Positions 3,053 to 48,887 of a stretch of 64,000 bases of DNA are shown here, one piece after another. Under the pieces are notes generated by a model. The model was given only the letters and a program-made list of their open reading frames with translations, was not told the origin of the DNA and ran no database searches. Source of the DNA: Macrostomum hystrix (Eukaryota > Animalia > Platyhelminthes). Made by a program: the position numbers and the translations under genes. Numbering within the stretch: position 1 is the stretch's first letter; each line of letters begins with the position of its first letter. The stretch lies in assembly GCA_950097015.1 (NCBI GenBank), contig CATNEN010000007.1:8246001-8310000 (forward strand). The letters run 5' to 3'.

Positions 3053-3235
3053 TGTGAGAGTGGCAAAATTTGTTCAAATCTTTTTTGAGGAGTCATTTGG
3101 CTCGAACTATGAGTATAAATGTAGAGACAGTTTCAACATTGATAAGGGGATCGCATAGCAACCAGGAAGCTAGCCAATGCGCTTGGATTGGGAGACGAGA
3201 AACTGGAACAGGGAATTTGGTTCTGCACATGCAAA

Positions 3236-3900
3236 TTTTAGGTTTATGAATAGATTTAGGTTTATGAATAGATTTAGGTTTATCATTCGATTTAGGTTTA
3301 TCATTCGATTTAGGTTTATCATTCGATTTAGGTTTATCATTCGATTTAGGCTTATCATTCGATTTAGGTTTATCATTCGATTTAGGTTTATCATTCGATT
3401 TAGGTTTATCATTCGATTTAGGTTTATCATTCGATTTAGGTTTATGAATAGATTTAGGTTGACGAATAGATTTAGGTTTATCATTCGATTTAGTTTTACG
3501 AATAGATTTAGGTTTGTGAATAGATTTAGGTTTATCATTCGATTTAGTTTTACGAATAGATTTATGCTTGTGAATAGATTTAGGTTTGTGAATAGATTTA
3601 GGTTTATCATTCGATTTAGTTTTACGAATAGATTTAGGTTTGTGAATAGATTTAGGTTTATCATTCGATTTAGTTTTACGAATAGATTTAGGTTTGTGAA
3701 TAGATTTAGGTTTGTGAATAGATTTTGGTTTGTGAATAGATTTAGGTTTATCATTCGATTTAGGTTTATTAATAGATTTAGGTTTATCATTCGATTTAGG
3801 TTTATTGTAAGATTTTGGTTTATCGTTAGATATATGTTTATCATTAGATTTAGGTTTATCATTAGATTTAGGTTTATTGTAATATTTAGGTTTATGAAAA
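3236..3900. repeat. 18-bp AT-rich minisatellite (TTTAGGTTTATCATTCGA / TTTAGGTTTGTGAATAGA)
   Basis: Tandem repeat; accounts for the KPKSND, MINLNR and FRFIIR pseudo-ORFs. Confidence 0.95.
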
Positions 3901-4272
3901 TATTTTTGGTTTTTTAATATATTTAGGTTATTCAATAGATTCAGGTCTGTGAAGGATTTAGGTTTTACGAGACTAAATAGACTTAATATTTAGTCGTAAT
4001 TTGTTACTAATAGTCGTTATAATATTCGTAGACTCGGGTTTTTACTCTTAGTTTGTGCTCGTACATATTATTAATATTGATAATATCGGTTATAATATAG
4101 GTTTATAGATAAATTGGTTCAAAATATTTATGAGTTTATTCAGATTGAAAGCTCGTTGTAAATTTACTTCATTGCCACATTCAGGTTTAAAATAGTCTAA
4201 AAGGGGCGCACGATAGCTTTCAATAAATTTAGCAACCGGTTTCAAAAGCTGTCAGAAAATCGCCTCCCGTTC

Positions 4273-4397: not shown

Positions 4398-5270
4398 AGC
4401 TAGAATATAGCTAGAATCGAGGCAAGAACCATAGCTAGAATCGAGGCAAGAACCATAGCTAGAATCGAAGCAAGAACCATAGCTAGAATCGAAGCAAGAA
4501 CCGTAGCTAGAATCGAGGCAAGAAACATAGCTAGAATCGAGGCAAGAACCGTAGCTAGAATCGAGGCAAGAACCATAGCTAGAATCGAGGCAAGAACCAT
4601 AGCTAGAATCGAGGCAAGAACCGTAGCTAGAATCGAGGCAAGAACCATAGCTAGAATCGAGGCAAGAACCATAGCTAGAATCGAGGCAAGAACCGTAGCT
4701 AGAATCGAGGCAAGAACCATAGCTAGAATCGAGGCAAGAACCATAGCTAGAATCGAGGCAAGAACCATAGCTAGAATCGAGGCAAGAACCGTAGCTAGAA
4801 TCGAGGCAAGAACCATAGCTAGAATCGAGGCAAGAACCATAGCTAGAATCGAGGCAAGAACCGTAGCTAGAATCGAGGCAAGAACCATAGCTAGAATCGA
4901 GGCAAGAACCGTAGCTAGAATCGAGGCAAGAACCATAGCTAGAATCGAGGCAAGAACCGTAGCTAGAATCGAGGCAAGAACCATAGCTAGAATCGAGGCA
5001 AGAACCGTAGCTGGAATCGTAGCAAGAAACATAGCTGGAATCGTAGCAAGAAACATAGCTGGAATCGTAGCAAGAAACATAGCTGGAATAGAAGCAATAG
5101 CAATAAGTGTATTCGTAGCAAGAACTATAGCTAGAATCGAAGCAAGAACCGTAGGAAGAACCATTGCTAGAATCGTAACATGAACCGTAGCTAGAATCGT
5201 AACAAGAACGTAGCTAGAATCGTAGCAAGAACAGTAGCTAGAGTCGTAGCAAGAACCGTAGCTAGAATCC
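4398..5270. repeat. 24-bp minisatellite (ATAGCTAGAATCGAGGCAAGAACC), degenerating toward the right
   Basis: Tandem repeat; accounts for the LASILAMV pseudo-ORF. Confidence 0.95.
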
Positions 5271-5701
5271 AGCTGTACTGCGACCTGCTGTGCCCCGAAA
5301 AAACACAAGTCTAACATGCTATTTGTGATATATTATAATTATAATAGTAAAGATGCATTCATAGCGATATATGTAGCCACATTCTTCTGTCACAGAAAAA
5401 TATCTCTCAGAGTTATTTTGCAGTTACATACAATGCCTTCGGAGGAGTTAGAGAGGCCAGAGCACCAGCCCGCCCGCTCGGTGGCACAATTGTATTTTTA
5501 CAGTTGTTGCCCAAACGGGGTCTTAGAGACCGAGAGGGAAGAAAGACGGCCAGACAGCCAGACACAGTAGCAGCCAGTTGCTGCAGAAGGCGCAGCGGCT
5601 GTACTTAAGCTTGCCGCTGAGATCCAGAAAAAGAATTTCATTCGGTGGAGTTGAGAGCAGAGCTCAGAGCGGTCAGTCAGTGCCAGTGAAACAGTGCAAG
5701 C

Positions 5702-8700: not shown

Positions 8701-11667
8701 TCGATTCGACTCAAACGATTCGGCGGATTCGGATTCGGCGAGGGCGAGGAGGCGATTCTCCAGATCGAACGGATCGAAAAGGAACTGCTCTGGCTTGTAG
8801 GCGGACTGAGGGGAGAAAATTGCAGGTGAATGGAATGACTCAGTAGCAAATTGCACTACTTATGAGTAGGGTACAAAGTAAATTATGCTTGAAAGGCAGG
8901 TGAATAGGCAACCAACCAGCCAGCCAACCATGCGGCCAGCAATGGGCAGCGACTCCAGATCAGGCAGGCGGGCCGCGGCGAACTCGACGCCGGCCAGCGA
9001 GGCCTCGCGGGCGCGTCGCCTGGCAGCAGCCGCGGCGGCCAACGCTGCTAGCCGGACAGCGGCAGCTGCGTCGTCATTGGCGCGTTGCTGGCGTCGATCT
9101 TGCGCAGCGACGTCATCGTTGCCGTCATCCAGGCGGGTGGCGAGATCATTGACGCGGCTCAGCAGCCGACGCCGGAGCTTGCGACCGACGCCTTCCTGCG
9201 GCGCCGAAAAAGCTTCTTCATCGTCATCCGCCGGAGCTGAAGCCCTGGCGGCCTGAGCCTCCGGCAGGTAGTGATCCACGCAGCGGTCCACCCAGGTCAC
9301 CACAAGGTCGCCGCTGTCAGCCGACAGCCGACGGCACCTTTCCAGGCTGTAGGCCTTCGCCGATTGAGCCTGCAAGATCAATTCGGAGATTGGCGATCGG
9401 CACTGTTACACATGGGGTCATGATCCCTACCAAATATCAGGAATGGGGATAATAACATCCAAAACCCTTTGGTACAGGATGGGGGGGTGAGTGGCAGAGC
9501 GTCTAACGCGTTTGCTTCTCGTACCAAAGTTTCTGAGCTTGATGCCTTCAAGAGAAGGCTTTGAGGCTTGTCGAGCAATCCGTAAAAGGCCAACCCCCCG
9601 ACGATGAGAGAGTCAGGTCAGATGTACACACCTGTGTGCGTGTGTGATCAGGAGTCAGCGGAATGGGCAGAATTGCCTCCTGGCTGTCAGCGGGTCTACT
9701 GTCACCAGATGATGTGCCATTGCCCACAGCTACACAGAAACTCAAGCATTTCCCACCTTGGCCACGGCGTTGTTAACTGGCGCCATGAGAGCCGCGGCTG
9801 CCTCCATCGTCGGCCTGACAGCGCCACGAGCCGACGCTATCAGGTCCTCGGCAGTGGCCTCCCGGACGGCCGGACAGCGGGCCTCCAGTCGATCAAGCAG
9901 CTGGGCGCAGGCTAGCCGGTCCAGGCGGGACAGGCCGGGCTCGAAGCGGGCCAGCAGGGGGCCGGCGGTGGCGGCGGCCCGTCGCAGGCCGTCCTCGGTG
10001 AAGCCGGCGGCGGCGCGGACAGAGCCGGGGCTGGCAGCCAGGGCCCAGTCGTAGTAGCTGGCGGCCCGCTGCCAGGCGGAAGCGACGGCCGGATAGGCGG
10101 CGACGCGCTGAACAAAATCGGCTACCATTTTCTCTTTGCCTTGTCTTGGCTTTGTTATAGCAATCAAGTGCGAGAGGCACGAATTTGAATTTTATAGCTG
10201 GAGTGAAAAAACGGGGGAAATTCTTGACGACTTTTAGACGAGACACGAGAGATCTCGGGTTCGAATCTGTTGAGGATGAATGAAAATGTATTGCCAAACG
10301 CGCACTAATGAGCTAATCAGCTAATAACTGCTGTCTGCGGTTGTCCTGCATATTTAAAATACCTCAGCCAGCCAGACAGATAAGAAGGGCCGGAAAATGG
10401 GGCAAAGTTAAAAGTCCCATATAGTAGCTATCCGAAAGGTTGAGTCATATATTTCGGGACTAATATCGACGCATGCGAGATATTAATAGACTCAAAGAGA
10501 AAAGTCTGAAGTCTAAAGTCGATGTTGTGTCACAACCAAATGCAAGGAGAATGACCAAATTAATTGCTAATGCACTTGTTGTAGATTAAAAAACAAATAA
10601 AAGCTACAACATGTGGCTTTTCGAGGCACTTTTCCGAATAAACAGACAAGGGTTATTTGAAGGACACTCACAAATCAGTATACGTTGGATATTCTTTAAT
10701 GGATCATAGTCATAAACTAGAGTTCTAGCCTCCAATAGGTCATGATCCCTACCAGAGTACTAGCAATATTTTGTCTAATGTACTCGTATCACAAATCCCA
10801 TTCGAAACCATAATTTTCCTAGACGATCGCTTCCTGCTGCGGTTCCTGCGAGTGGCCAAATTCGACCAGAGCCGCGCCCAGATGCTGCTGGACAACTACG
10901 TGACGATCCGCAAGTCCGACAAGGGCACGCCCCAGTGGTTCGAGTACCCGAGCCTGGACAGCCCTGAGGTTCAGGAATACCTCGGCCATCCCTACCACGT
11001 GTTCCTCGGACACACCAGCGAAGGCGAAGGCGTCTTCGTGTCTTCCATGACGCACTGGGATCCGGACAAGATGAGCTTTGACCAGCTGGTCCGCTGCCTC
11101 TACATGTCCATGGACGCGGTGCAGCTAGACCAGTACAACCAGATCAACGGCGTGAAGGTGCTGGTGAACATGAGCCGAGCCGATAAGCGCCAGCTCAGCT
11201 TCTTCGAGAATCGCAAGAATTTCTTCGCCCTGATGCGCAACTGGCAGGACGCATTTCCGGTGCGCATCCGCGCCGTCATCTACGTAAACGAGCCCGTCTT
11301 CTTCGATGTGATCTTCGCGCTGATCAAGAGCGCGCCTTTCCTCAAGGACAAGTTCAAGAAGAAGCTGCACAAAGTCGGCAAAGACTATGACCGGCTCAAG
11401 CGGATCATCGGCGAGCAGGACGCCGACCGGCTGCTGCCCAAGGAGTTCGGCGGCAGCAACGGCTCGCTGCAGGACCGGACGCAGTGGACGAGGGACATGT
11501 TCTACAGCGACCGGCTCAAGCGGGAATGGAGCCTGTTGCGCGAGGACATGGCCGTAGACGAGGCCAAGCGGCTGCCAACAACCCGCGACTATCTGCGCAC
11601 CGATGACAGCGCCGCCGACCCGACCACCGGCATCCGGGGCACCTTCACCAAGCTCAACGTTGACTGA
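5702..11667 (+). CDS. CRAL-TRIO (Sec14-like) lipid-binding protein, alpha-tocopherol transfer protein/clavesin/CRALBP family; exons 5702-5867 and 10823-11667
   Basis: Exon 1 AEKELNEKPE...LRRWL...PHL joins in phase 1 (AGC G|GTGAGA ... CCTAG|AC) to DDRFLLRFLRVAKFD; QINGV, QDAFPVRIRA..YVNEP and LLPKEFGG motifs. Confidence 0.93.
5923..6975. repeat. 34/35-bp purine-rich minisatellite (AAGAATGAGAAATTCTAAGAAGTGGGGATCGGAG) in the CRAL-TRIO intron
   Basis: Tandem array starting about 55 bp after the exon-1 donor. Confidence 0.95.
7712..8535. repeat. 29-bp minisatellite (GGGATTAGGCTCCCGGAAATCCCAAAACT) with an internal hairpin
   Basis: Tandem array; GGGATT(T)...(A)AATCCC inverted pair inside each unit. 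Confidence 0.95.
8671..10128 (-). CDS. Perilipin (PAT-domain lipid-droplet protein) nested antisense in the CRAL-TRIO intron; exons 10128-9757, 9369-~8929, 8805-8671
   Basis: PAT-like N-terminus MVADFVQRVAAYPAVASAW...YY...A..LLARFEPGLSRLDRLACAQLLDRLEARCPAV, downstream VDRCVDHYLPE motif; phase-0 GT-AG junctions; last exon less certain. Confidence 0.85.
9480..9735 (+). mobile_element. Degenerate copy of tRNA-derived SINE family A (in perilipin intron 1)
   Basis: GTGGCAGAGCG head and the CAGATGTACACACCTGTGTG...CAGGAGTCAGCG..GGGCAGAATTGCCTCCT body shared with the copies at 22.8k, 40.7k and 44.7k. Confidence 0.75.
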
Positions 11668-12548: not shown

Positions 12549-12625
12549 TGAATGTGGCCACGCCGCGGATTCGAGCTCAGGACCTTGTTGCAAGAGTCGG
12601 AGGTGGGTTACCGCTCTGCCGCCAT
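12549..12625 (-). mobile_element. SINE family A 5' head fragment
   Basis: GAATGTGGCC.CGCCGCGGATTCGAGCTCAGGACCTT...ACCGCTCTGCC matches the reverse complement of the family head. Confidence 0.65.
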
Positions 12626-13215
12626 AGGCACTTGCTAGCCCTAGCAACTATTCCTTGCACAGGTGAAAGCTGAGAACAGCAGAACTGGGAATGCTTTCGG
12701 CATCAGAAGAAGAAGACAAAGCAGCAGCTGCCAAAGTGAGCAAACTGAATTTGTTTTAGTTCAGAAATCAGGCACAATGATCCAAGCTGAACAGATCAGA
12801 TTAACACGGACTGAATTCATAAACTAATGTGAAACAAAATACAAAGAAAATTTGATTAAAAAAACTGATGATAAATGAGAAAAGTGATAGGGGGTCAGCG
12901 CGAGCTAAGCATTTATTTTTTTACTATTATTGAAAAAAAAACTATTTAAGAGACAGCTGCGGTCATGGGCTACTGACAGTAGCGTTCGCTAGATTTTTTA
13001 TTGCTTGAAGAGCTCAAAAATGCATTCGCTACGCAGTTTGTTTTAAAAGATTTGAATTATTGCTGGTCGATGACTGTTGATTTGTTCACAATGGTCAGCG
13101 CCTAGAACAGGCCCCGGCTACGGCTGCAGTGCCGGCACACAGCGGTGTACACATTGGCGCCGCGACACACTCTGTCAACACAGAGAGGGGTGGCACATCT
13201 ACCTTATTTTGCATA

Positions 13216-13585
13216 AAATGTGGCCTATACTGCGGATTCGAACTCAGGACCGATAATCAACGATATGAAATATAGCTTATAACAGAGGAATCAAACTCAG
13301 GACGGATAACCTACAATATGAAATACGGCTTATAGCTGAGGAATCGAACTCAGGACGGATAATCAACAATATGAAATATGGCTTATAACTGAGGAATCGA
13401 ACCGATAATAATAACATAATAACAATGAATGTGGCCTCGCCGCTGAATCAATAGACTTAGGGACCTTGGCGCGAGCGGCGAACGCGTTAAACTCTTTGCC
13501 ACCGACCCCATCTCAGGACCGATAGTCTGTCTGTGCTCTACTATATTAAATACGGCTTATAACTGTGGATTCGAACTCAGGACGT
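13216..13585 (-). repeat. Tandem ~55-60-bp units containing the SINE B-box segment (GGATTCGAACTCAGGAC), plus a SINE head at 13426-13510
   Basis: Repeated GGA(A/T)TCGAACTCAGGAC...GATAAT...AATATGAAATA.GGCTTATA. Confidence 0.7.
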
Positions 13586-13695
13586 ACCGATTCACATTAA
13601 ATCTAACCCGAGTTCGAGACGACTTCACATAATTTTATTTCGCTTTAAGGACATCATAACAGGGGCTGAAATCGAAGCGATAGAAAGTGAACAGC

Positions 13696-16600
13696 TTACT
13701 TGCACACCCACGGCCCCATCAGTATCTGGGCTGCGGCTGCAGATCTGCTGTAGCCAAGGGATCCCATCCGCATGGCCATGGCGGCAGCTGGAGTCAGGTG
13801 CTGCTGCTGCCTGGCTGAATATGCCGCGGCAGCGGCGGCTGCCGCAGCAGCAGCAGCAGCCGTCGCCGCAGCCATCGATCGGCTCTGCGGCGCCATCATG
13901 CGCAGCGGGGCGCCGGTGACACCGGAGACAGGGACGCGGAGAAAGCCATATGGCACAGACAGGACGGCGGCTGCTGGCCGGGGCGCGCTGGCCACAGCGG
14001 CTGCAGCTCTGGCAGCTGAGGCTGCAGCAGCTGCCGAGGCGGCGGCTGACGCGGCGGCGGAAGCGGCGGCTGCCAACGGTTGCGGCGATGGTGAGTCCCG
14101 TAACTGGCGCTGCTGCTGTTGCTGGTTGTCCCTGCTGGCAGCTGAGGTCACAGGAACCAGCTCTCGGCAGCTGTTGACCAGCGACTGAGGCGCCGGGGTT
14201 GTCGGGTTGCTGGAGCCGCCAGTGCCCAGAGAGGAAAGATCGAGGCGCGGCTGCTTGGCCGTTGCAGCTGCAGCGGCGGCAGCGGCAGTAGCGGCGGTAG
14301 CCCCGGAGCCGAGCACAGGCGCCGTAGGCGGACGCGGCGGGTTCGAGTCCTGCGATGCGCAGCGGCGGCGCTTTCTGGCTGCGGCCGCTGCGACGCCATC
14401 CGGCATGGCTGTGGCGGCGGCTGCGGCCACAGCAGCCGCGGCAGCTGTGGCAGCGTCGTCTGAGAAGCTGGCGGCGGCAGAGCTAGCGGCTATCGAGAGT
14501 AGCACCACCTCAGGCCAGTCGGAGCGCTGCTGAGCCGGTGAGGCGTCGACGCACACTATGTCGATGTCGGGGACGAAGTACGCGGCGAGGTCGGCCGTCG
14601 GCTGGAGGCGAGCTTGCACCAGAGTGCCCGGGTGGGTGGCCTTCACTGCGCGGGCGGCGGCCTCGCAGGCCTGGGGGAGTTTAGAAAAGGACAGGAGTGG
14701 CTATTAGCACTTGACAGGGCTAGCGAAATGAGCGGTCCCTCCGCCTCCGTTCTGCATCCTATTGGGCCGGTGCACCCTACAGCAAAGTCAAAGGCTATGA
14801 CCCCAGTCATAATACACCAGGAGTGGCCGTGGACACAGTCATGATACACCAGGAGTGCCCATGACCCCAGTCATGATATACCAGGAGTGCCCATGACATC
14901 GGTCATGATACACAAGGAGTGGCCATGACACCAGTCATACACCAGGAGTGGCTAAACCCCCAGATATTGCATGCCGAGACTCACCACAGCACCAGGGCAC
15001 TCCAGCAGGACCAGATCGGCGCCCAGACGGCAGGCTCGCAGCGCCTCTGATTCGCTGGCGCACACGGCGCCAACCCGGCCGAAGGGGGCCGCGCAGCGTC
15101 TGGCGGCGGCCAGGGCGGACGCAGCGCCGGCTCCGGCGGTGTTGACAATGACGACGCCGCCAACACTGGACGAAGCCGACGAGTGCATCGATGAAGGAGA
15201 AGACACCGCCGGGCGAACACCGCCTACCAGTAGGGCGTGGCGCTCCAGCAGGCGCTGGCCAGGCGTGCAACGGCTGCCACCGTCGACCGCGTCGGTGCAG
15301 ACGGTGCCAGGCCAGTCGCACAGAGCGGCCTTTTCTACTAGCCTGAATAAGTATGTTTCATTTAAGGAGCGGTACTTAACAGTGTTCCCTAATCTGCTTC
15401 TCAGGCGAGTCACTATGGGAGGAGAGAAAGGATGTCTCGTGTTTAGACTAACTAAATTTAGACCAAGTCACTCTCACCTGTTAGCATAGGTGGCCAAGCC
15501 TGAAGCTCTGGAGAGCACAGCCGGCAGGATTCGCCTTGCCCTTGCCAGGCAGTCCGGGCTGCCACTGATGGTGGCAACTCGCTGAGGCACGGCAGCAATG
15601 TAGGCACCCTCAGCCACAGACCAAGTGGCCTCGCAGCGCAGATGAGTTAGCAGGGCGTCAGCAAATGGCACACCAGCCAGGACACCTGAGATTGAGCAGT
15701 GATACTTTATTGCCAGAGCCAGAACAAACATGACATGATAAAAAATTAAATTTATGGAGATTCGAAGGTAAAAAAGGTGGTAAAAAACAGGCAGGAAAAT
15801 ATTAAATATATAAAAACCCAAATATAACACTAGTTAAGAAGTACTCATAAGAAGCTTATTTAATTCCTGAAGCTGTATCTGTGAGGCAGAAACCAACATT
15901 ATTACAAGAGGATAAGAAGATTTCTGGCAAAAAGCCCAACTAATAAGCAAAAAAATGTTTTTTCTATACCCAATATAATAGATGTAAGAGTCTAGACTCT
16001 TATCAAATCAGGTGTAGTTCAGATTTTGATCTTAAAAATCTCTATTGGCCAATGAAAGAAGTCAAAAATTAAATATTAAATTATCAAATTTTAATTTTCA
16101 AAATGAAACTTCGAGAGCCAGTCTTAATTGTAGAACAGTGCAAACAGAAAATAGCACAATAACAGATTGTCTAGTAGTATTGTTTTGGCTTAAGGCACAT
16201 GAAATGGAAAAGTTGCATTGAAGGCCCTATAAACCCAAATTTGGTCCAATAAGAAGTTAGTTAATTACAGTTTATGATCATTTTGTCTGCCCCTTTTCAT
16301 CTGCTACCTTTTTGTCTACTAATATATGATATAGTCCCCATTAATCTGCTAACGTAGGCATTTGTTGGAATAACTAATTATGTCATCAAGCTTTGCATTG
16401 AAATTTTATGCGAATGTCTGATAATTTATAATTTGTTAGAATGCTAGGATTTCTCTGAAAGTTTTGGAGCTAAGAAGTAAAAAAAAGTAGACACAAAGCC
16501 AGAACCAAACATTTTCATTTCCAATTATTGCCATTGGTCACATCTGTCACACTGAAGGGCATGCTGCCTAGCTATAACAACAGTATGGCAAACAATATAA

Positions 16601-18117
16601 TCATCCATGAAAGCTATAGCTAAAGCCATCATGAGAGCCAGTTTCTTCTAAAATTTTCTTCTTAAAATACTGTTACAAAATTTATATAGGCATAATATTT
16701 CTATAAATGATGCTACTAAACAAAAATTAAATATTTATTAAATTTGTGTAAAGATTTATCATCACAAATACACTTTCTATAATAAAAGAAATGTTTTAGA
16801 ATAATAGGGCCTATGTCCTTACAGTTCTCATCCTTTTTTAAATAGCCATTTTGTCTGCCAGAAGACAAAATGACCGCGCATTGTTATTACTGCTGATATT
16901 AGTGCTGATGTTGTACACTGATGGTTTGCTAATACTTGGGCTAATACTTAGTTGTCCCCAAATCGAAAACTAAAAGAATGCTAAAAACGAATCCGGTCCA
17001 TTTTGGCGACAAGTCATTTTGGCAACAAACATTGAAACCGCAGTAATAATGGATCTGATAGTGTTTGCTTATTGAGTATGTAATGTATTTGATTGTTCTA
17101 CTTGTTAATGTATTCCTGTTATAATATTTGTTTTAACATGTAATATAAATAGCGAGTTTGGATCAGTTTGGTCCTCGCTCTATGTGCGTCAACCCCACCT
17201 GTCTTACTTATAAGTAGCATCGTTTGCTGTCACCAATATTTTATAACTAACATGTTCGTTATCTACTTCGTTATTCTACACAGGTAGAAGTGCTGTCGCG
17301 ACTTTCGTCTCTGCCTTCTGTCCTCTATTCACTCTTTTGTTCTCTGCACTTTTCTTGTTTACATTGTCCAGTTCAGTCTAGTTCTTTCTCTCTCGTTATC
17401 TCTGCTGCTGATCTCTCATTCTCTCATTATAGATCTAATCGAGATCACAGTGCATTTGTTGCCGATTTGTTCCGCGCTTCTGCCGATTTGACGGATTTGT
17501 GACTTCTTTCATACGATTTAAATAAAAGTAAAAAATATATATAAATAAAATAAATTTGTTCCACGGCTTCAAAAGTATTGTCGCCGAAATGGTTGTCGCC
17601 GAAATGACTTGTCGCCGAAATGGTTGTCGCCGAAATGGACTGTTTCCCTAAAAACAATATGAATCAGTTAAAAGTCAGCTTTACAACTAATTTTACTATT
17701 TAGCTAACTATCTAACCATTATTAAGTTATACTTCTAAATACAGAATGGCAAAACAAAGAAAAAATAAACGATTTTCCTAATAGAATAAATGTTCAACTT
17801 AGTGCACTTGAATTTTTATAAAAGTTTAAATTATTATGTTAATACATGAAGTAACCATCTTTCAAATATTTTATAAGCTTACCTTTTGATTCAAAAACTA
17901 TTGCATAAAATACAGTATTGTGATTAAATCCATGAACTTCATCCACGTCCTCATCAAAAGCTTGGCCGTTTTCTACAGAGCAATGCGAATTTGCTTTGCT
18001 AGAAATGTCTGGTTCAATATGGACATGAAATCCACCTGCATCACATAGGATCTCATCTTCCTCAATCCACAATTTCACTATTCTTTTTATAGACGTAAGG
18101 GATGTGAAGTTCGTCAT
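13696..18117 (-). CDS. Quinolinate phosphoribosyltransferase (QPRT/NadC)-like protein with degenerate active site and long Ala/Gln-rich C-terminal extension; exons 18117-17883, 15685-15478, 15342-14985, 14670-13696
   Basis: Colinear similarity to animal QPRT (recalled): IVKLWIEED, GVLAGVPFADALLTHLRCEATWSVAEG, RVATISGSPDCL..ARR....LSRASGLAT, SRCTPGQRLLERHALLVGG, EALRACRLGADLVLLE, VKATHPGTLVQA, IDIVC; all three GT-AG junctions are phase-compatible. Confidence 0.85.
14797..14952. repeat. ~31-bp tandem repeat (ATGACCCCAGTCATGATACACCAGGAGTGCCC) in QPRT-like intron 3
   Basis: About five degenerate copies. Confidence 0.85.
16989..17647 (-). mobile_element. Non-autonomous DNA transposon (MITE, Mutator/foldback-like), copy 1
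   Basis: Termini GAATCCGGTCCATTT.GGCGACAA and TTGTCGCCGAAATGGACTGTTTCC with tandem subterminal CATTTCGGCGACAA units; flanking direct repeat CTAAAAAC (16981-16988 and 17648-17655); reverse-complement homolog at 18933-19548. Confidence 0.88.
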
Positions 18118-18127
18118 TGTGGAATAC

Positions 18128-18727
18128 CTTGAAAATGTAATACTTTGACGAGATAGATGAAACAAGAACGAAAGTTATGTCTTCTGTGTTAAAAACTTTA
18201 AGTCTGTTACAGAAATATGCCTTTTAAGTAACAGTCTTGTAATACAGCTATTGTGTGTTTTAAAAGTATATATATTTAACAATATATAATTTTTAAGTCA
18301 CTACCTATTAATTATTTAACAAAAAAGCTCCAGAATATGTTGCTAACGTTAAACGGTTTCGAAGAAAAATGTAGGAAAATATAAATCCAAACGACGTTGT
18401 TACTAAGTGAAACAAAATACTTTCTTCTGTTATATATAATTTTGAATTTCACAGGCCTTTTATTCAGAAACATATTATCAGATTTACGTTTAACAATATT
18501 GGACCCTATAAGGTCTTAGAATATATATAATCTATTCAATTTCTTTGCAGCTGACTGACACCGTTTTTACAGATCATTAGTGTGTGGCCAACTGCCTCAT
18601 GTGTTATCTAGCCTGTGTGTGCAGTGTAAGCGCAGCCATTAATACTGAATAATATTTTTATCCGTTTTTATCGTATATCAGCTTTCTGGACTAATTAGAC
18701 ATTACAAAAAACATCATTTTCTACCAC
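18128..18727. promoter_or_regulatory. Putative AT-rich bidirectional promoter between the QPRT-like and LMF2 genes
   Basis: Divergent ATGs at 18117(-) and 18728(+), about 610 bp apart; acceptor-like sites TTTTCAAG (18128,-) and TTCTTTGCAG (18550,+) upstream of each ATG. Confidence 0.55.
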
Positions 18728-21700
18728 ATGGCGCAAGTTATTGTATTCAACTGGTTTATTCTTTCTCTCATTTTAATTTATCTGATGGCCTTTGTGTCTA
18801 TTTATGTTCAACTACCTGGTAAGTCAACCCATTGAGCATCGATTAACTTTAACTCAATAACCAAGTAGATTAAAATCTGTACTATAGTATAGCTAAGATA
18901 ATTGACAAAGCCTTTGTAAGGTAGGTTAAGAAGGAAACAGTCCATTTCGGCGACATACCATTTCGGCGACAACCATTTCGGCGACAAGTCATTTCGGCGA
19001 CAACCATTTTGGCGACAATACTTTTGAAGCTGTGGAACAAATTTATTTTATTTATATATTTTTTACTTTTATTTAAATCGAATAAAAGAAGCCACAAATC
19101 AGCAGTTCTAAGCGCGGAACAAATCGGCAACAAATGCACTGTGATCTCGATTAGATCTATAAGTTCGATTAAAAGTAAAAGACCTTACTGTCCCACAGGG
19201 GCATTCATGCGGCTGCAATCAAGTCAGCAAAATATTTGCCGTCGCCAAAATATTGGTGACGGCAAACAATGCTATACTTATAAGTAAGACAGGTGAGGTT
19301 GATGCACATAGAGCGCGGACCAAACTGATCCAAACTCGCTATTTATATTACATGTTAAAACAAATATTATAACAGGAATACATTAACAAGTAGAAGAATC
19401 AAATACATTACATACTCAATAAGAAAACACTATCAGATCCATTATAACTGCGGTTTCGATGTTTGTCGCCAAAGTGGTTGTTGCTGAAATGACTTGTCGC
19501 CAAAATGGTTGTCGCCGAAATGACTTGTCGCCGAAATGGACCGGATTCGGTTAAGAAATGTATTATCAAACTGAAAATTTCTTTCCATATAAAGTGTGAA
19601 TCGCAATGGCTGGCAAGGTCTAGCAAATATTTTCATTGCCATCTTTACAAAAGAGCAAATTGGTTAATCATTGTGAATACCTAATCTATAGTTTCTAGCA
19701 AACAATGTTGTAAAACTGACTTGGGTTTTTTCATACTAGGCCTACATAATTAAGAATCAAGAGTCCCTTGTTATGCCACTTTTCTGATACTATGCACATA
19801 TTTCTGCTAGGGCCTTTGCATAGTACCTCTTTAAAATATTACTGTGTAGAGGTTTAGTGGTCGCAAGTTTGCGAGTAATTAAGAGCTAGGCAGTGGTTTT
19901 TTGTATTATCTGTTGAGTCTCGTATGAGATCAGAAAGGTTTGATTAACTTTTTGATTGCTGGATCGGGTGCAGTATATTTATAGTGTATTTTAGTGTTTC
20001 CGGAAGTTTCTAGAAATATGCTGTACAGTAAAAAAAATTAAATAAGCTATTTATTATTAGATGCAAGCACATGAGGAGTTTGTGTTAGATATAATAATTT
20101 CTGGTGAATTATGCAATTATTGTACTAAAGGAATATTCTGAGAAAAAATGACAAAGTTTAATTTGTACTAGGCCTATATCAAAGAATTTTCTAGAAATCA
20201 ATATTTTCGTACTGTATAGAATGTTCTTAAAGGTCAATTGAATTTCCTACAGAAGTTTCGCGAGTTAAGGTCACTACAACTGCATTATATATACAGTTGT
20301 TTGTGTTTATCTCCCATTTAAATTACTTCTTACGGGGTATTTGTGCCCTAACTATATTAAAATATAAGCTTGAATAAAACATTCACAAACACAATTTTCA
20401 GGTTTATATGGAGAGAAGGGCATACTGCCTATCTATGCTAGCATTTCAAAAGAAGGTAAGCATTTATTCATCATGAATGATACATTTCTTTTAAACTATA
20501 GCTAATACTTATGTATAAAATATACAAGTCATATTTTAGATGACCTTCCAAATTTACTGACCCAACTTTCATGCCTTTACAATGTCCCCAACTATTCCTC
20601 ACCCCAAACAGAGGAGACAGATTTTAAGGTGGGTTTTTTTCTGACTGCTCATAGAATCAACCAAGATAAATAATTTGCAGAGGTGCACTCAGTGCAGCAG
20701 CTGTTCAGTGGCCAGGCCACTCTGCTCCGCCTGGCGCCCCAGCTGGGTCTCAGCTACGCGCAGGCCGCTGAGCTGGTCGCAGGCCTCGGCTGCCTGATCG
20801 CATTCGTTGCCTGCACCTTCCCAAAGCTTCGCTGCATGCCGACCTACCTGCTGCTCTGGCTGCTTTACCTGTCTCTGTTCAGTGTCGGCCAGACCTTCAT
20901 GTGGTTCCAATGGGACATACTACTGCTGGAAGCTGGCTTCCTTGCCATCGGCCTCTCTATCCGGTTCCCGATTAATGGCGCCGATCGCATCTCCAGCGGC
21001 CTGGGCATGTTCGCCGTCAAGTGGCTGCTGTTCCGCCTCATGCTAGCCTCCGGTGTGGTGAAACTCACCAGCGGCTGCCCCACCTGGTGGGGTCTGACTG
21101 CTCTGGACTGGCACTACGAGTCTCAGGTGCGAGCCAGGGCTTCTGTGCTAAATAAAGTTAGCCTAAAATAGAGCCTTATTAGTAGTCAAGACAAGAATCA
21201 AGTTTTTTTCAGGCGCGGAGGATACCGCCACCATAGATCCCCTTTCGTTTCGATAGCTAGGGAAGGCCAGCATTTGACAATCATCGCCAATCCGTTCCCC
21301 ATATCACTGCCTACTCTTTTAGTGCCTGCCGACACCTGTCGCCTGGTTCTCGCACCAGCTGCCGCCCTGGTTTCAAGCGCTCTGCGTTGTAGCCACATTC
21401 GTTATCGAAATTGGCGTCCCGTTTCTGTTCTTTGTGCCAATCCGTGCCGTCAGAAAGTTCAGCTTCTTTTCACAGGTAACTCTTGCTTTTAAATTAGTAT
21501 AAAGCACTTTTATTGTGATCTTCTGCATCTGAGGCCAGTTTCCCTCAGGGATGGTTCGTAACTCCCATCTGCCCCATTCCGCCTCTTCTTCAGGTCTCAC
21601 TAACTCCCTTCTGCCCCATTCCGCCTCTTCTTCAGGTCTCACTAACTCCCTTCTGCCCCATTCCGCCTCTTCCTCAGGCCTCACTGACTCCCTTCTGCCC

Positions 21701-24639
21701 CGTTCCGCCTCTTTCTCAGGTCTCACTGACTCCCTTACAGCACAGGGCCGCTCTTTAGGGAGTCTTGTTTGTTGCTATGCGGAGTTTATGCATGGCTGTT
21801 ATTGCTTTTGTCAATCTTATGCAAAATTCCAGTTGCTGCTACAATTTTCCATCATTGTGTCTGGCAACTACAACTTCTTCAACCTGCTCACTATCTGTCT
21901 GTGCCTCTCGCTGCTTCACGATGACGATTTTGCCGCTAGTAGAAAACTTGGATCTACAGGTGCGTGTGATTGCTTTGATGTCAATTACTTCAAGTACTTT
22001 GCAGGCTATTAATAAATGTTTCTAAAACTGCATTCGCTCAGTATGCGAGTTAAATCATTTAGAGAGGTTTTAGTTCTTGGTTGGCGGTCTGATCCGAGAC
22101 GTCCGGAGTTTAAATATAAGGCACAGTGTAATTTGAGTGGGTTTCGTGGCCCTCCAGTCCATGGACTGTGCAGATTTACGCATAATAGCTGCAGCGGAGC
22201 CACTGGCTGTGCATCTGACTCCACTGAGTTAAGTGAGATTTAATTGCCTATTGTATTTGCAGGAATCCACCTACTGGAGCTGGCCATCACTGCCACCCTG
22301 CTGGGAGGCCTGTTCTTCCTCACCGTCCGCCTGTTCAGCCTGTCGGTTGGTCCCGGATTGCGAGTTAACAGCAAGATTGGTAATGAGGCCTGAAAATATT
22401 CAGCTTGAAAGCTTGGGACGCTCGTGAAACTTAGTCAGAAATTGAAGCTTTAGTGCATGCGGTGTCTTTGCATTTTAACCCTCGCCAATCCCGTAGCTGT
22501 AGTAATTATTACTCATAAAGAAGCGGGGTTCCGCTTCCGTTGTGTTCCGCTGACTCCTGAGCACGCGCTCACACAGATGTGTACATCTGCCCTGACTTTC
22601 TGATCGTCAGGAAGTGTACACTTTCACTGTGCCTCGGAGCTTGGAGTGAAATACACGACAAGCTCCAAGGTCTACTCTCCGTTAACCAGTTTCACACATT
22701 CAGGCACCAGTGACCAGTGAGGGTCATATAGAGATAGGGTTATCTCTTCCTTTTTGGTGCTGGAGTACATTCCTGAGTCAGGGGGGGTCGGTGGCAGAGC
22801 GGTTAACGCGTTTGCCTCTCGCGCCAGCGTCCCTGAGCTCGATTCCGCGGCGAGGCCACATTTATATTTCGGGCCCTTGTCGTGCAATTTACGCCATTGA
22901 GGGCCAACCTCCAAGGCACAGAGGATGAGAAAGTCAGGGCAGATGTACACACCTGTGTGAGCGTAAGCGTGCGTACGGTATCTGTGCTCAGGAGTCAGCG
23001 AATTGGGCAGAATCGCATCCTCGCTGGCTCCTCGTGTCGCCAAATAATGTCATTGCTTACAGCTCTCCTGCCATTATTAATATTATTCGTATATTATTGA
23101 GTCTCCTGGAGGGCCGCAGGACTGCCGCTCTTAATTAACGGCAGTTGGGGGGTGTTAGCTCACACGATCCCTGTGCATGCAGGTAGCCTAGTCGTTATTC
23201 TGATTATTTCTGACGGTTGTGAAGGGACTGGTGGGTCCCCATGAGAGTGCTGCAGCTTCCTTACTGGCAAGGCAGTCTGCCAGATCATTCCCACGGGCGC
23301 AGGAGCTGATGGCAAGGATCTCATGATATTCTGCTATTGAAAAGAACACACTTCCGCTGCATTTTGACATTTAAACTCGGCAGCCTTCACAATGGACGAC
23401 CTGGTGAAGTTCAATCACAGCGGCCTGATATTCTCTGTGTACGCTGGCCTGGCCTGCCTGCTCTACGAGACGCTGATGGCTATTGTCCGGTGAGTTACAT
23501 TAGCCGCTCCCGAATCAGCCTCATTGTCTTTGTGTCTGCAGGTAGAAAAAAGATAAATTGAAGCCCTGCTGTATTTTTTCACTCTGCTCAGCGCTGTGCT
23601 CAACTGCCGCGGCCCGTTAGGCAAACTTCTGGGCCTAGCCCAGGCTCTGCTCCTGTCTGCTTTTGTTGCTTTCATCTTCACCGCCAGCCTGGTGCCGCTG
23701 TCCGAGACTGACAAATCACTGCAGGCCGCCCTGCCACCTGTTGTGCGCGCCCTGCACAGCCGCACCCGGGGCCTGGAGATTGTGAACAGCTACGGACTGT
23801 TCAGGCGGTGAGTGGGGCCCGGAGATTGTGAACAGCTACGGACTGTTCAGGCGTCAACAAAATCCCAACATCTTTTCCAAATCCTATGATCACATTTTTT
23901 CTTAAGAAAATTGACACCTAGATTTTCTCCTGGGGTAAACGGATAAAATTAGTGCATCAAATTTCTAGTGGTAACAAGTAAGCATTCCACCTGCTCCCCG
24001 CGCAGCATGACCGGCGTTGGCGGACGTCCTGAGCTGGTGCTGGAAGGCTCAGCCGAGTCCACCTCCGGTCCCTGGCTGGAGTACAACTTCCAGCACAAGC
24101 CCGGCAACCTGAGCCGGCCGCCCAGCTTTGCCGCGCCGCATCAGCCCCGCCTGGACTGGCAAATGTGGTTCGCCGCCCTGGGCAGCTACCAGCAGAATCC
24201 CTGGCTGTTGCACCTGGTGCACCGCTTGCTTAGCAACGAGCCCAGCGTCCTGGCCCTGCTAGGCGACAATCCGTTTGAGAACTTGCCGACCGGTCCTCGG
24301 TACATTCGCGGGCAGCTGTACATCTACCGGTACACCCGGCGGGGCGACCCGCACAGCCGGCGCGGGCATTGGTGGAGCCGGCAGCTACAGGCCGAATACC
24401 TGCCACCAGTGAACCTGGCCAGCCTGGCTCGCTTCGTTGAATCGCAGGGCGTAACGGTATCGCCCCCGAAGCCGCCTTTGCGGACCTCTCTGGCTGCCAC
24501 CGTAGCAGCTGCGGCTGCTCGAGCTGCGACGGCCGTCCGGTCGGCTGTCGGTCAGCCGGAGGGCCTGCGCTCCGTGGCCGCCGCTGTGGCGACTGCGGTC
24601 TGTGCTAGACTGGCCACCCGAGCCGTCTGGTACGACTAG
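18728..24639 (+). CDS. LMF2: Lipase maturation factor 2-like ER membrane protein; exons 18728-18818, 20402-20455, 20681-21126, 21323-21475, 21833-21959, 22263-22379, 23384-23489, 23592-23807, 24006-24639
   Basis: [130 protein letters not shown]; GT-AG junctions are phase-consistent. Confidence 0.95.
18933..19548 (+). mobile_element. Non-autonomous DNA transposon (MITE), copy 2, inverted relative to copy 1
   Basis: Starts GGAAACAGTCCATTTCGGCGAC and ends GCCGAAATGGACCGGATTC; 9-bp direct repeat GGTTAAGAA at 18924-18932 and 19549-19557. Confidence 0.9.
21558..21737. repeat. 39-bp tandem repeat (ACTCCCTTCTGCCCCATTCCGCCTCTTCTTCAGGTCTCACTA-like) in an LMF2 intron
   Basis: About 4.5 copies. Confidence 0.88.
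22505..22670 (-). mobile_element. SINE family A fragment
   Basis: CGCTGACTCCTGAGCAC...GTGTACATCTGCCCTGACTTTCT...CACTGTGCCT. Confidence 0.7.
22781..23100 (+). mobile_element. SINE family A, near full-length
   Basis: tRNA-like head GGTGGCAGAGCGGTTAACGCG...GAGCTCGATTCCGCGGCGAGGCCACATT, family body and ATT-rich tail. Confidence 0.85.
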
Positions 24640-28020: not shown

Positions 28021-29672
28021 TCAAAGCTTCCTGGCGTTTGGCTCCGTCTCCCTGGCAACGCTGATGATAAAGTCGGCCCACTTCGCCGGCGCCTCCATCA
28101 TGAGGAAGTGGCCAACGCCGGTAAGAAAGTGCAGCCGGCACTGCGCCAGGTGGCGGCTGTGCAGCGCGCGCGGAATCGCCTGCGGGCTGACGGCGTCGGA
28201 GTCGCCCCAGAGCAGACGGCAGGGCAGCCGCAGGGTGCTCAGAGCGTCCAGCCAGCGCTGCTCAAAAAGAAACCGGTCGTCCAGGTAGCGGATGGTTCGG
28301 TGCAGGTTCCAGGCGGCGCCAAACTCCCGGTTGAGGTCCAGCATGTCGGCGATGTCGGCATTCCGTTCGGCCACGTCGGCGCCAGGGCCCCAGATGGAGC
28401 GCAGCTGTTGCTGGGCGAGGCCGGGTGGCTGATAGCCGCTGGCGCCCAGCCAGGCCAGGGCGGGGCCGAGCAGCGGCAGGCGGAGGAGGCGCTGGCTGAT
28501 GCGCAGGCTGGCCAGGCCGATGATCATGCCGCCGTTGGTGAAGGTGACGGACTGGAAGAAGCCGTCCTGGAAGCGGTCGGGCAGCAGGCCGCGCGAGTGC
28601 CGGGTGAGAATCTCAGCCAGCACTGAGTCGCCCATGTCGTGAGCGACCACGTGGCACCTGGCAATTGGCGGGTCCCGAACTGATGCAAATTCTCCTATAT
28701 AAGATTGCAACTTTCCTTGGGGGTGAGTGGCAGAGTTTGCCTCCCGCACCAAGGTCCCTGAGCTCGATTCCGCGGCGAGCCCGCATTCATTTTAGCGCAG
28801 CCCCGGAAAGAAGGCCTGCAGGCTTTTCGCGCAATTTACGCACTTAAGGGTCAGCCTCAAAGGCACAGTGAGAGTGTACACTGCCTGGCGATGAGAAAGT
28901 CAGGGCAGATTTACACCTGAGTGGACGGAATGGCCTCCTCGCTGGCTGCGCGTCTACTTTCACCAAATGTACCTTTGCCCGCAGCCCTCCTGCAATCACA
29001 ATTCTTATTACAACTGTCCTGCTGGAGTTCAACTTTCTGTTTCCATCCGAATTACAACTTTCTTTCTGGACTGCAGCTTTCCCATCTGGATTGAAACTAT
29101 ATTCAGTCCTGATTACAATATTTATTTTAATCTGCCGCATAAATTATTCAGTCGGCTTGCGAGCTTCCGACAGAATTGTAACTTTAACTCAAGGAAACTC
29201 CATTTCTCAAGCCGACTCACTTCTTAACATCGAGCGCCGTCCATACAGACAGGGTGACATCGGCGTGGTCCTGTATAGAGTAGGAGTAGTTGCTAGGCAA
29301 CTGGTCTGAGAAGCCGAAACCGACGTGGTCGAACATGACCACCCGATGGAAGCCGGTCAGCAGCCGCGGCAGCGCCTTACGATAATCGAAGCTGGACGAG
29401 GGAAAGCCGTGGATGAGGCACAGCTGCCTGGCGTCGGGTCCGCCCGGATCGCCGGAATAGTTCGGCCTGTCCACCACCACGGAGAACACCCGGTAGCCTG
29501 AGAGCAGCTCCAGCATGCGGCCCGCCGAGTGCCACTGCTGCAGCGCTGGGGACAGGCTGGCCAGGTCGGCTGAGGGCCGCTCTGGCGGCTCCGGGACGTT
29601 CAGCAGCAGGCCAAGAGCCAGGGCCACGATAGCGATGAGTAAGGTGACGAGCCAGCGAAAATAACCTGACAT
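28021..29672 (-). CDS. MEST: MEST-like (mesoderm-specific transcript) alpha/beta hydrolase of the epoxide-hydrolase family; exons 29672-29221, 28657-28021
   Basis: N-terminal hydrophobic anchor; IHGFPSSSFDY oxyanion motif, DHVGFGFSD, YSIQDHAD, nucleophile elbow AHDMGDSV, TNGG, LLWGDSDAVS, VGHFLMME; AA|GTGAGT...GCCAG|G junction. Confidence 0.88.
28719..29010 (+). mobile_element. SINE family A copy in the MEST intron
   Basis: GAGTGGCAGAG...GTCCCTGAGCTCGATTCCGCGGCGAG...GATGAGAAAGTCAGGGCAGAT...GCAGCCCTCCTGCAAT. Confidence 0.8.
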
Positions 29673-29698
29673 GGCTGCGGGTCTGAGGCGAGGTGGGT

Positions 29699-30006
29699 CT
29701 GACACCCTCTGACCAAGTGAGAGACGGTGGGGTGGATGCGGCCTGACACCCTCTGACCAACTGAGAGACGGTGGGGTAGATGCGGCCTGACACCCTCTGA
29801 CCAACTGAGAGACGGTGGGGTAGATGCGGCCTGACACCCTCTGACCAACTGAGAGACGATGGGGTAGATGCGGCCTAACACCCTCTGACCAACTGAGAGA
29901 CGGTGGGGTGGATGTGGCCTGACGCTCTCTGACCAACTGAGAGACGGTGAGGTGGATGTGGCCTGACGCTCTCTGACCAACTGAGAGAGGGTGGGGTGGA
30001 TGCGGC
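29699..30006. repeat. 44-bp minisatellite x7 (CTGACACCCTCTGACCAACTGAGAGACGGTGGGGTAGATGCGGC) immediately upstream of the MEST ATG
   Basis: Tandem copies; followed by a ~28-bp CCAAGACTAGTT..CCCAGTTTGAGAA repeat to about 30100. Confidence 0.93.
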
Positions 30007-38479: not shown

Positions 38480-40091
38480 TCAGTTCATCAGTCCATCATT
38501 TGTCGGTCGGCGCCTCAACATATCTTGAATCTGGGCCCGGAAACTCTCGCTGAACTTGAAGAAAATGGCAAAGCTGATTGCGCTATCCAAAGTCACCAGA
38601 AGGTCGTTGAGTGGCACCACCCAGTCGGGGGAATCCTTGTACAAATCGAAGAGGATGAAGATAGCACCCGGTGACTCGAAGATTGTAAAGAAAATAGACA
38701 GCAGCATTACGATCCAGGTCACACTGCGCCAGAATCTAGCAGCTGCTACAGCTGGGTTGCAGTTAGCTTCATTTGCACCGCCGGCAGGTTCGCGAACCAT
38801 CACAGGTTCATTTGCCTCAATATGTTCAACAGCTATTTGGTTTTCCTCATTTTCATTGGCGTCATTGACATCGGCAGCAGCTTCGTGGGCTTCATTGACC
38901 TCAGCAGCAGTATCGTTGACCTCGTTAGCTCCAGCAGCTGCTGCGACGTCACCTGCGGCTGCATTGAGTCTGCTCCTCACTAGATGAACTGCGCTGCAGA
39001 TGGAAGCCAGAATAATTACTGGCACCGGTACGTACGTCTGCAGAGTTCTCAATAGCCGCAGCAGGTTGACCGCCAGATTGTTGTCCGTTTCTTCAACCGG
39101 GACGTCCAAAGCCACAAAAACGCCGAAGGTTGCGGATGCTGAGACCAGCATCAGGATCGCGAAGGCGAACAGCTGAATGCGGCGAGTCAGCCAGCTGCGG
39201 AATCGAATCGGCCGCAGGATCGCCACGCAGCGGAACCCGGTCAGGCAGGCCGTCCACAGGTTCTTGAGGGTCAGACTGAATGTCATCCAGTAGTAGTAGA
39301 ACTGCGGGTTTGGGTTTAGTTTTGGGTTAGTAGCAGAGCGGTTTCCCTCTCGCACCGAGGTCCCTGAGCTCAAATCCGCGATGAAAATTTCAGGGCAGAT
39401 GTACACCTTGTGTCCTGCTGGCTGCGGGTCTAGTGTCAAGATGTGCCAGCGTCCACAGCCCTTTTTCAAATAAGTACGCTCGGGATACGCATAGCAGTTT
39501 TTTTAAGTAAAATCCGGTACGGCTTTTGCTTGTATTATTGTCAGTATACAGTATTGTTTCCGATTAAGAAAGTATTTTACTGGAAGTCTTAGTGAGCCAT
39601 TTGTACTCAAACTTTCAAATTTTTCTCCAGAACTTGCGAAACATTAAAGACAGTCTTTATCTGCAACTGCATTTAGAGTGAAAACAGTACAAAAGCGTTA
39701 GTGACCCGAACAATTCTTGCCCTTTGCGTGCACTCACGCGAAACACCTTGCTGGCCACGGAGTCCTTCACCTCAAACTGGCTCCGCGCGAGCAGTGCCAA
39801 GTCGAGTGAAATGTAGCCGACCAGAGACATGCAGTAGTTCACCTGCGTCGCCTGCCAGATGATGAGGCCGACGTCGAAGGCCTGCCGATTGCGGCGGTAC
39901 TTGCGGATCAGAGCAGCGAGCGACAGGCAGCCGAGCAGCAGGCCCGCCACGGCCACGGGAAGAGTGCACAGCCGCATGCTGACGTACGCGACGGTTGTCT
40001 CATGCGGAGCGACCGTGCCGTTGCCAGTGACATTAGAGCAATTGTCCATGGTAAAGTTTAGCAGCTGGCTATTGCTAGTGCTCTCGGACAT
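38480..40091 (-). CDS. Divergent rhodopsin-like (class A) GPCR, peptide-receptor-like; exons 40091-39738, 39301-38480
   Basis: N-glycosylation sequons in the N-terminus (NFT, NCS, NVT, NGT), seven hydrophobic segments, FRCVAILRP at the DRY position, FFTIFESP in TM6, LDSAISFAIF.....FR for TM7/H8; CGC|GTGAGT...CGCAG|TTC. Confidence 0.85.
39330..39440 (+). mobile_element. Internally deleted SINE family A remnant in the GPCR intron
   Basis: GCAGAGCGGTTT..CTCTCGCACCGAGGTCCCTGAGCTC...CAGGGCAGATGTACAC...GCTGGCTGCGGGTCTAGTGTC. Confidence 0.65.

Positions 40092-48292: not shown

Positions 48293-48887
<595 letters not shown>

Follow-up and report, generated by a model that had tools for sequence, protein, structure and literature searches.

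A transcribed and spliced QPRT-like gene

We analysed a 64,000-nucleotide stretch of the genome of the flatworm Macrostomum hystrix (contig CATNEN010000007.1, positions 8,246,001 to 8,310,000; hereafter the window, in which all positions are counted). On its minus strand, from 18117 down to at least 13700, lies a gene whose product resembles quinolinate phosphoribosyltransferase (QPRT), the enzyme of de novo nicotinamide adenine dinucleotide (NAD) synthesis. A first reading of the DNA (the original prediction) had described it as a catalytically dead QPRT paralog with an intact frame, a low-complexity tail and a regulatory role. We found that the frame is intact and that residues needed for catalysis are lacking, so the dead QPRT derivative stands as the probable identity of the product. 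The paralogy and the proposed roles fared differently, as described below.

Contigs of four public runs were aligned to positions 13600-18200; runs X2, X3 and X4 belong to one study and X1 to a second. Four exons had been predicted to join in phase, and the contigs agree: all three introns, each with GT..AG borders, are removed exactly as predicted in X2, X3 and X4, and the removal of intron 1 was also observed in an X1 contig (joint 15683/17881, cut +2). Although the types of the runs are not on record, neither an intronless copy of exon 3 nor any intronless QPRT-like sequence was found in the genome searched, so the spliced contigs must derive from RNA. The gene is therefore real and is expressed as a mature, in-frame mRNA. 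No other ATG was found upstream of the ATG at 18117 in the sequence read. Two coding differences were seen between the runs (17971 and 18112) and both are synonymous, two sites being weak evidence.

The 3' end differs from what had been expected. The open reading frame (ORF) was thought to stop at TAA 13698-13696, but this TAA sits inside a splice donor, and contigs of X2, X3 and X4 depart from the genome at exactly 13700, just before it. Their further 741, 228 and 290 letters do not match 13600-13699. A fifth exon must therefore exist below 13600. The best candidate for its coding part lies at the acceptor listed in Table 1; 12727 and 12170 are alternative acceptors, all of them ranked from the sequence alone. 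With less than 56 residues to be gained from any of them, the protein would have about 600-650 residues. The intron after exon 4 holds a tandem repeat, and pieces resembling the 3' half of a tRNA (GGTCCTGAGTTCGAATCC) are scattered nearby as well as at 12560-12600 and 13440-13560. ARAGORN found no tRNA genes in these repeats, which are probably debris of short interspersed nuclear elements.

Exon 4 (14670-13700) runs past the end of the fold into a long tail. The predicted open frame was confirmed: it has no stops in 323 codons, and the other five frames have 2-9. Equal openness was reached by 18 of 5000 shuffles (first-order Markov P 0.006). The openness is thus real but modest, because GC-rich sequence readily stays open. 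The tail is retained in the mRNA and not spliced out, as contigs of X2 (record 9) and X3 (record 14) are unbroken over 13889-14669 and further contigs (records 8, 13 and 18) extend it down to 13700. At 14124-14266 the contigs of X2, X3 and X4 have 38 letters in place of 143, a net loss of 105 that stays in frame. We rejected the joint 14123/14267 as an isoform, since only 21 letters support one of its sides and these lie in GCN-repeat sequence. The difference could be a shorter-tail allele or a contig of another Ala-rich gene.

Alanine makes up 35% of the tail, which also has runs of Gln and Pro. The basic cluster announced as ARKRRR was found as RKRRR. No Pfam family was found in the tail even at E values up to 10, and the ESM Atlas gave no usable match. 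Neighbouring ORFs of the window contain 10-26% Ala, so Ala-rich, GC-rich coding sequence is ordinary there, and because it is common in the neighbouring genes the composition of the tail does not indicate a transcription factor. The most likely origin of the tail would be former downstream sequence: the ancestral stop would have been lost, translation would have read through into GC-rich sequence, and the GCN repeats, seen as the TRF arrays of Table 1, would have expanded later.

Table 1. The QPRT-like gene and other features of the window. Labels ending in "by eye" were given from ORF translations only, with no family library.
Feature	Position	Strand	Remarks
5' untranslated region	18118-18198, at least	-	X3 contig (record 14) spans 17881-18198 and has 55 further letters
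Exon 1	17883-18117	-	ATG at 18117; 78 codons and 1 base; N-terminal helix remnant VKLWIEED, then acidic insertion
Intron 1	15686-17882	-	GTAAGC..CAG, 2197 nt
Exon 2	15478-15685	-	QPRT N-lobe; best conserved part; Arg102 equivalent kept
Intron 2	15343-15477	-	GTGAGA..CAG, 135 nt
Exon 3	14985-15342	-	first two thirds of the alpha/beta barrel; 119 residues
Intron 3	14671-14984	-	GTGAGT..CAG, 314 nt
Exon 4, fold part	14491-14670	-	first 60 codons; presumed last third of the barrel, extremely diverged
Exon 4, tail	13700-14490	-	remaining 263 codons; low complexity; present in mRNA
Basic cluster in tail	14362-14376	-	RKRRR
Splice donor	13694-13699	-	GTAAGC, containing TAA 13698-13696; context AA/GTAAGC; same type as intron 1 donor
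Coding part of exon 5, best candidate	13100-13171	-	pyrimidine-rich acceptor at 13171; GC-rich single-copy island; would add 23 residues, then TAG
Perilipin-like gene	8860-10167	-	by eye
CRAL-TRIO (SEC14-like) gene	10771-11667	+	single exon; convergent with the QPRT-like gene
Lipase maturation factor-like gene	20683-24639	+	by eye
MEST-type alpha/beta hydrolase-like gene	28021-29936	-	by eye
G protein-coupled receptor-like gene	38480-40091	-	by eye
Fibrinogen-related domain protein-like gene	43499-43903	+	by eye
SLC1 glutamate/neutral amino-acid transporter-like gene	56963-57421	+	by eye
TRF arrays in tail	14020-14073; 14264-14301		
Dispersed repeat in intron 1	17290-17430		young
Tandem repeat in intron 1	17578-17638		15 nt, 4 copies
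Tandem repeat in intron 3	14793-14952		32 nt, 5 copies
Tandem repeat in intron after exon 4	13216-13402		53 nt, 3.5 copies
Minisatellite arrays	3093-3935; 4400-5317; 48257-48908; 51939-52440; 61532-61975		spurious ORFs of 140-300 aa in several frames, both strands

Similarity to QPRT and the ligand-binding residues

All homology searches were run per exon. The original prediction had called for a comparison with Pfam and with human QPRT, and exon 2 matched both. It belongs to QRPTase_N (PF02749) with 27.3 bits against a cut-off of 27.0 (30.5 bits in a six-frame genome search) and aligns with residues 55-119 of human QPRT (E 1.6e-9), 26 of 66 residues being identical to mammalian QPRT. Exon 3 aligns with residues 127-222 of pig QPRT (E 2e-7); in BLASTP against mammalian QPRT it reached 7e-15, with identity at 41 of the 92 aligned positions. 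The second family domain, QRPTase_C (PF01729), stayed below its cut-off of 23.1 bits with 13.3 bits in exon 3, the exons being scored separately. It had no match in exon 4, and the genome search with it did not recover the locus. For the nadC model TIGR00078 we obtained 32.9 bits with exon 2, 17.2 with exon 3 and 34.9 in the genome search, which even when summed remain far below the cut-off of 198.4. Judged by these alignments, colinearity with QPRT is solid for residues 50-222.

At both ends it is only suggestive. Exon 1 had no Pfam or PDB match and gave in BLASTP a match of just five residues (WIEED, E 0.48); its best local alignment pairs VKLWIEED with ANSWLQED at 19-26 (z 2.49, 57 of 2000 shuffles; hhalign E 0.27). 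The first 60-70 residues of exon 4 had no Pfam, PDB or BLASTP match either, and the best local alignment there pairs ARAVKATHPGTLVQARLQPT..IDIVCV with QPRT residues 233-278 (z 2.26, 67 of 2000 shuffles; hhalign E 0.09). Both weak alignments fall in the expected colinear register. The proposal of a protein colinear with QPRT thus holds for exons 2 and 3, while neither exon 1 nor the fold part of exon 4 is significant alone. The acidic insertion foreseen in exon 1 is present after WIEED, with 8 acidic residues among about 32. At the start of exon 3 we also observed RLVEK(AAL) (15342-15319), although the true counterpart of FRLVEKYGLL is QRLLERHALL, 30 residues later (15252-15229). A small internal duplication or mere chance could explain the likeness; at the DNA level the stretches are dissimilar.

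In the structure of pig QPRT with nicotinate mononucleotide, the carboxylate is contacted by Arg138, His160, Arg161 and Lys171 and the ribose hydroxyls by Glu201 and Asp222, while the phosphate is held by Lys139, Asn223 and Gln274 together with Gly249, Gly250 and Gly270 through their main chains (PMC3633916). We mapped these contacts through alignments to mammalian QPRT with the same numbering. Arg102, which also contributes to the site from the partner subunit, is kept. It is the only identical residue among the 13 contacts; the other 12 are changed, 10 of them non-conservatively. The replacement of most active-site residues was therefore confirmed by alignment, with some corrections in detail.

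Lys139 had been counted as lost (TRKT to SRCT), but this pairing was one register off. GTRKTTPG pairs without a gap with GGSRCTPG, which gives R138S and the conservative K139R. The SHR motif is absent, as had been noticed, and an 11-residue Ser-rich insert occupies its place. His160 corresponds to Ala within this insert, the exact pairing being uncertain, and Arg161 to Ser within the same insert. No Arg or Lys is present between VRP and AARR in exon 3, and the whole exon has a single Lys in its 119 residues. The losses of Lys171 and Glu201 were likewise seen: K171N is followed by a four-residue deletion (K171-H174), and Glu201 is replaced by Val. The change of LLDN into LLEC held for its second half, N223C (exon 3 residue 115, read from the sequence), while Asp222 is only conservatively changed to Glu (exon 3 residue 114). 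In the fold part of exon 4, VQARLQPT is found where QPRT has VEASGGIT, and the LGML stretch is deleted. On the weak alignment described above, this would correspond to G249L, G250Q, Q274D and a four-residue deletion around Gly270, which makes the proposed change of ASGG into ARLQ plausible, not proven.

In human QPRT, K139A abolishes activity, K171A impairs it strongly and R138Q has a mild effect (preprint 10.64898/2026.04.01.715697). Given K171N, E201V and the missing glycine phosphate loop, QPRT catalysis by the flatworm protein would be very unlikely. The same replacements bear on the proposal that the protein serves as a sensor of quinolinate or phosphoribosyl pyrophosphate (PRPP), which finds no support here, as the residues that bind the carboxylate, the ribose hydroxyls and the phosphate are those replaced.

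We also considered a type II phosphoribosyltransferase that has acquired a new substrate or reaction. The scaffold has been retained while the pocket was rebuilt, and the type II fold has diversified before, into QPRT, NAPRT and NAMPT. However, the residues for the ribose and phosphate of PRPP, needed by every reaction of this fold, are gone (E201V, G249L, G250Q and the deleted Gly270), and without orthologs no conserved new motif can be demonstrated. We regard this as the least probable of the explanations discussed here and give it hardly any weight.

The only QPRT-derived gene and the NAD pathway

The whole 220 Mb genome was searched with PF01729, PF02749, TIGR00078 and mammalian QPRT protein. 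None of the four queries revealed a second QPRT; they returned this locus and, for PF02749, one further gene, which we rejected because it is nicotinate phosphoribosyltransferase (NAPRT; TIGR01513, 194 bits on one exon). PF01729 gave three weak matches. One of them was opened and proved to be an adenosylhomocysteinase-like gene (L001), and the other two neither coincide with nor lie close to any match of mammalian QPRT or nadC. Exon 3 has no paralogs in the genome. The locus is thus the only QPRT-derived gene of M. hystrix, and its description as a paralog has to be dropped.

This finding also removes the ground for an inhibitory subunit of the QPRT oligomer, since the genome holds no canonical QPRT to be inhibited. 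The original prediction had offered two kinds of role: a dead paralog that poisons or regulates an active QPRT oligomer, and a transcription factor-like nuclear regulator or metabolite sensor. The RKRRR cluster and the poly-Ala/Gln sequence of the tail are in keeping with such roles, as is the N-lobe, which forms the dimer interface in QPRT (PMC3633916) and is here better conserved than any other part of the protein. However, there is no active partner to regulate and the residues that bind quinolinate and PRPP are lost. A nuclear regulator is suggested only by the composition and by a single basic cluster; no domain, DNA-binding or otherwise, was found in the tail, and Ala-rich low complexity is common in unrelated neighbours. 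We therefore consider these roles most improbable.

Five further genes of tryptophan breakdown and NAD synthesis were found, all as open exon-level matches. Tryptophan 2,3-dioxygenase (TDO; C3:2556870-2560960; four exons, model positions 22-346) and kynureninase (C1:22682351-22685133; model positions 4-399) look intact, and 3-hydroxyanthranilate dioxygenase (3-HAO; C39:1147158-1147904) is present with 129 bits. NAPRT lies at C1:1298792-1298935, and a gene of the Amidohydro_2 family, to which ACMSD belongs, at C1:3409473-3409889.

A QPRT that is still active with a remodelled site and closes the de novo pathway could be expected from this set of genes, as the locus is the sole homolog and TDO, kynureninase and 3-HAO are all present. 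In addition, Arg102 has been retained, and two of the changes, K139R and D222E, are conservative. Against this, K171N, E201V and N223C, the lost Gly249-Gly250 phosphate loop, the deleted Gly270 region and the replaced His160 and Arg161 would all have to be tolerated, although K171A alone strongly lowers the activity of human QPRT. The QRPTase_C and nadC scores are below their cut-offs, and with the Amidohydro_2 gene 3-HAO can serve catabolism alone. Continued QPRT activity would accordingly be a very remote prospect.

We propose instead the following course. The M. hystrix protein keeps a recognisable N-lobe and, of the barrel, the first two thirds, but with the loss of the quinolinate-, ribose- and phosphate-binding residues it would no longer produce nicotinate mononucleotide. 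The worm would probably make its NAD from nicotinate via NAPRT, as nematodes and flies do after QPRT loss, and tryptophan breakdown would still operate down to 3-HAO.

Apart from the QPRT-like gene, the window holds several neighbours and repeats (Table 1). The dispersed repeat in intron 1 has at least 40 scored copies genome-wide (108 candidates) at 92-98% identity. The copies often form pairs spaced by about 1.8 kb and may thus be the terminal repeats of a transposon. Contigs cover this repeat at a depth of 50-229 with 3-4% mismatch, hence other copies are strongly expressed.

Retention or decay, and comparison with known systems

Homology to an enzyme family and the loss of catalytic residues are among the marks of a pseudoenzyme, and both were found here. 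Retention of the QPRT scaffold for a non-catalytic role is the best reading of the sequence in our view, and we give it an even chance. It is favoured by the pattern of change. In exons 2 and 3, seven of the eight contact residues are changed, and yet 67 of the 158 aligned positions (42%; 39-45% across these exons) are identical to the mammalian enzyme. All 590 codons and the four splice-site pairs are intact, including the 78 codons of the AT-rich exon 1 (GC 0.37). Neutral decay that lasted long enough to replace the site would be expected to erase the rest and to break the 590-codon frame. Since uniform neutral decay would not give such a pattern, the scaffold was probably under selection for a large part, at the least, of the period after the loss of catalysis.

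Several observations weigh against this reading. When exon 3 was compared with 1.84 billion representative proteins, no ortholog was found, only two low-complexity matches, and a word-based protein search with residues 1-75 of exon 4 gave no match. The open frame around exon 3 (proteins of up to 299 aa) retrieved only QPRTs of mammalian type (36-39 bits), none of the proteins being from a flatworm. As a control, the database includes the M. lignano proteome, and the CRAL-TRIO neighbour is 78% identical to M. lignano A0A1I8I7K9. Even within Macrostomum, conservation of the QPRT-like gene can therefore not be demonstrated. In exon 1 and in the barrel's last third, divergence has gone beyond detection. 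The coding composition is also atypical: GC at third codon positions (GC3) is 0.29 in exon 1, like the surrounding intron, against 0.76-0.88 in well-conserved neighbours, where GC2 is 0.34-0.48. The tail is flat over the three codon positions (0.72/0.73/0.68) and carries no coding signature. The openness of exon 4 is only modestly unlikely by chance (P ~0.005), and another of its frames has just two stops. Finally, the conservative K139R and D222E leave formal room for residual binding.

Most of these points are what a decaying relic would show. In this explanation selection was relaxed after the tryptophan-to-NAD route had been abandoned, the catalytic residues and the stop were lost, the tail is old 3' sequence that is now translated and has no function, and the gene is still transcribed and spliced only because a disabling mutation has not yet struck. 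The missing ortholog beside a well-conserved neighbour, the undetectable ends, the composition and the ease with which GC-rich frames stay open would all follow, and C. elegans and Drosophila are known to have lost QPRT altogether (PMC11965519, PMC11019140). It fits less well with the intact codons and donor/acceptor pairs, above all in AT-rich exon 1, with the identity that exons 2 and 3 have kept around a changed site, which is unlike uniform neutral decay, and with the two coding polymorphisms, both synonymous. Decay is a serious possibility that we nevertheless place below retention as a pseudoenzyme.

If the scaffold has been retained, its non-catalytic role may be that of a dimer or oligomer scaffold or of a binding protein, by analogy with the human enzyme. 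Human QPRT binds caspase-3 independently of catalysis, and the dead K139A mutant still binds it (preprint 10.64898/2026.04.01.715697); an earlier account of this binding is Ishidoh 2010, as cited in PMC4726147. Extended by this analogy, the proposal would be that the lineage has dropped de novo NAD synthesis and has kept the QPRT fold purely non-catalytically with a disordered tail, perhaps in a caspase-related function. We put forward this fuller version tentatively and think it rather unlikely in all its parts.

It is well known that animals have lost the QPRT step, and they have done so several times; pseudoenzymes as such are equally familiar. Our full-text literature search found no description of a QPRT pseudoenzyme and, among the matches listed for quinolinate phosphoribosyltransferase and flatworms, no paper naming the enzyme. 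If the fold is retained without catalysis, this would be the first QPRT pseudoenzyme described and a handle on the roles of QPRT beyond catalysis, in an organism in which RNA interference and in situ work are routine. Purifying selection on the scaffold across Macrostomum would make it a naturally dead QPRT and lend independent support to an enzyme-free function of the fold. If the gene is drifting, it would offer a dated snapshot of the death of a metabolic gene, with the catalytic site lost first and the frame last, and the flatworm would depend on vitamin B3. In either case, an annotation pipeline that names the gene 'nicotinate-nucleotide pyrophosphorylase' would ascribe de novo NAD synthesis to the species in error.

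Canonical eukaryotic QPRTs (human 2JBM/5AYX-5AYZ, pig 4I9A, yeast 3C2E) belong to the same two-lobe family. The flatworm protein resembles them in exon 2 (residues 53-118) and exon 3 (127-222), in the level of identity given above, in the retained Arg102 and in a colinear order that begins with the N-terminal WL(Q/E)ED helix and extends to the IDI(I/V) strand close to the C-terminus. It differs from them by the acidic insertion in exon 1 and the Ser-rich one in exon 3, by the two four-residue deletions and by the addition of the tail and a further short exon. With pseudoenzymes generally it shares a homologous fold, replaced catalytic residues and an expressed gene; those are defined by conservation across species or by a demonstrated function, while the flatworm case rests on sequence and transcripts.

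The caspase-3-binding human QPRT is similar in that a scaffold role can outlive catalysis. It is, however, still an enzyme. C. elegans keeps the kynurenine pathway but has no QPRT, and its de novo synthesis is ineffective (PMC11965519), while Drosophila lacks both 3-HAO and QPRT (PMC11019140). Both have abandoned the QPRT step and rely on salvage or Preiss-Handler NAD synthesis, which is the likeness to M. hystrix. The difference is that the gene has vanished there, whereas in M. hystrix a transcribed, in-frame remnant persists.

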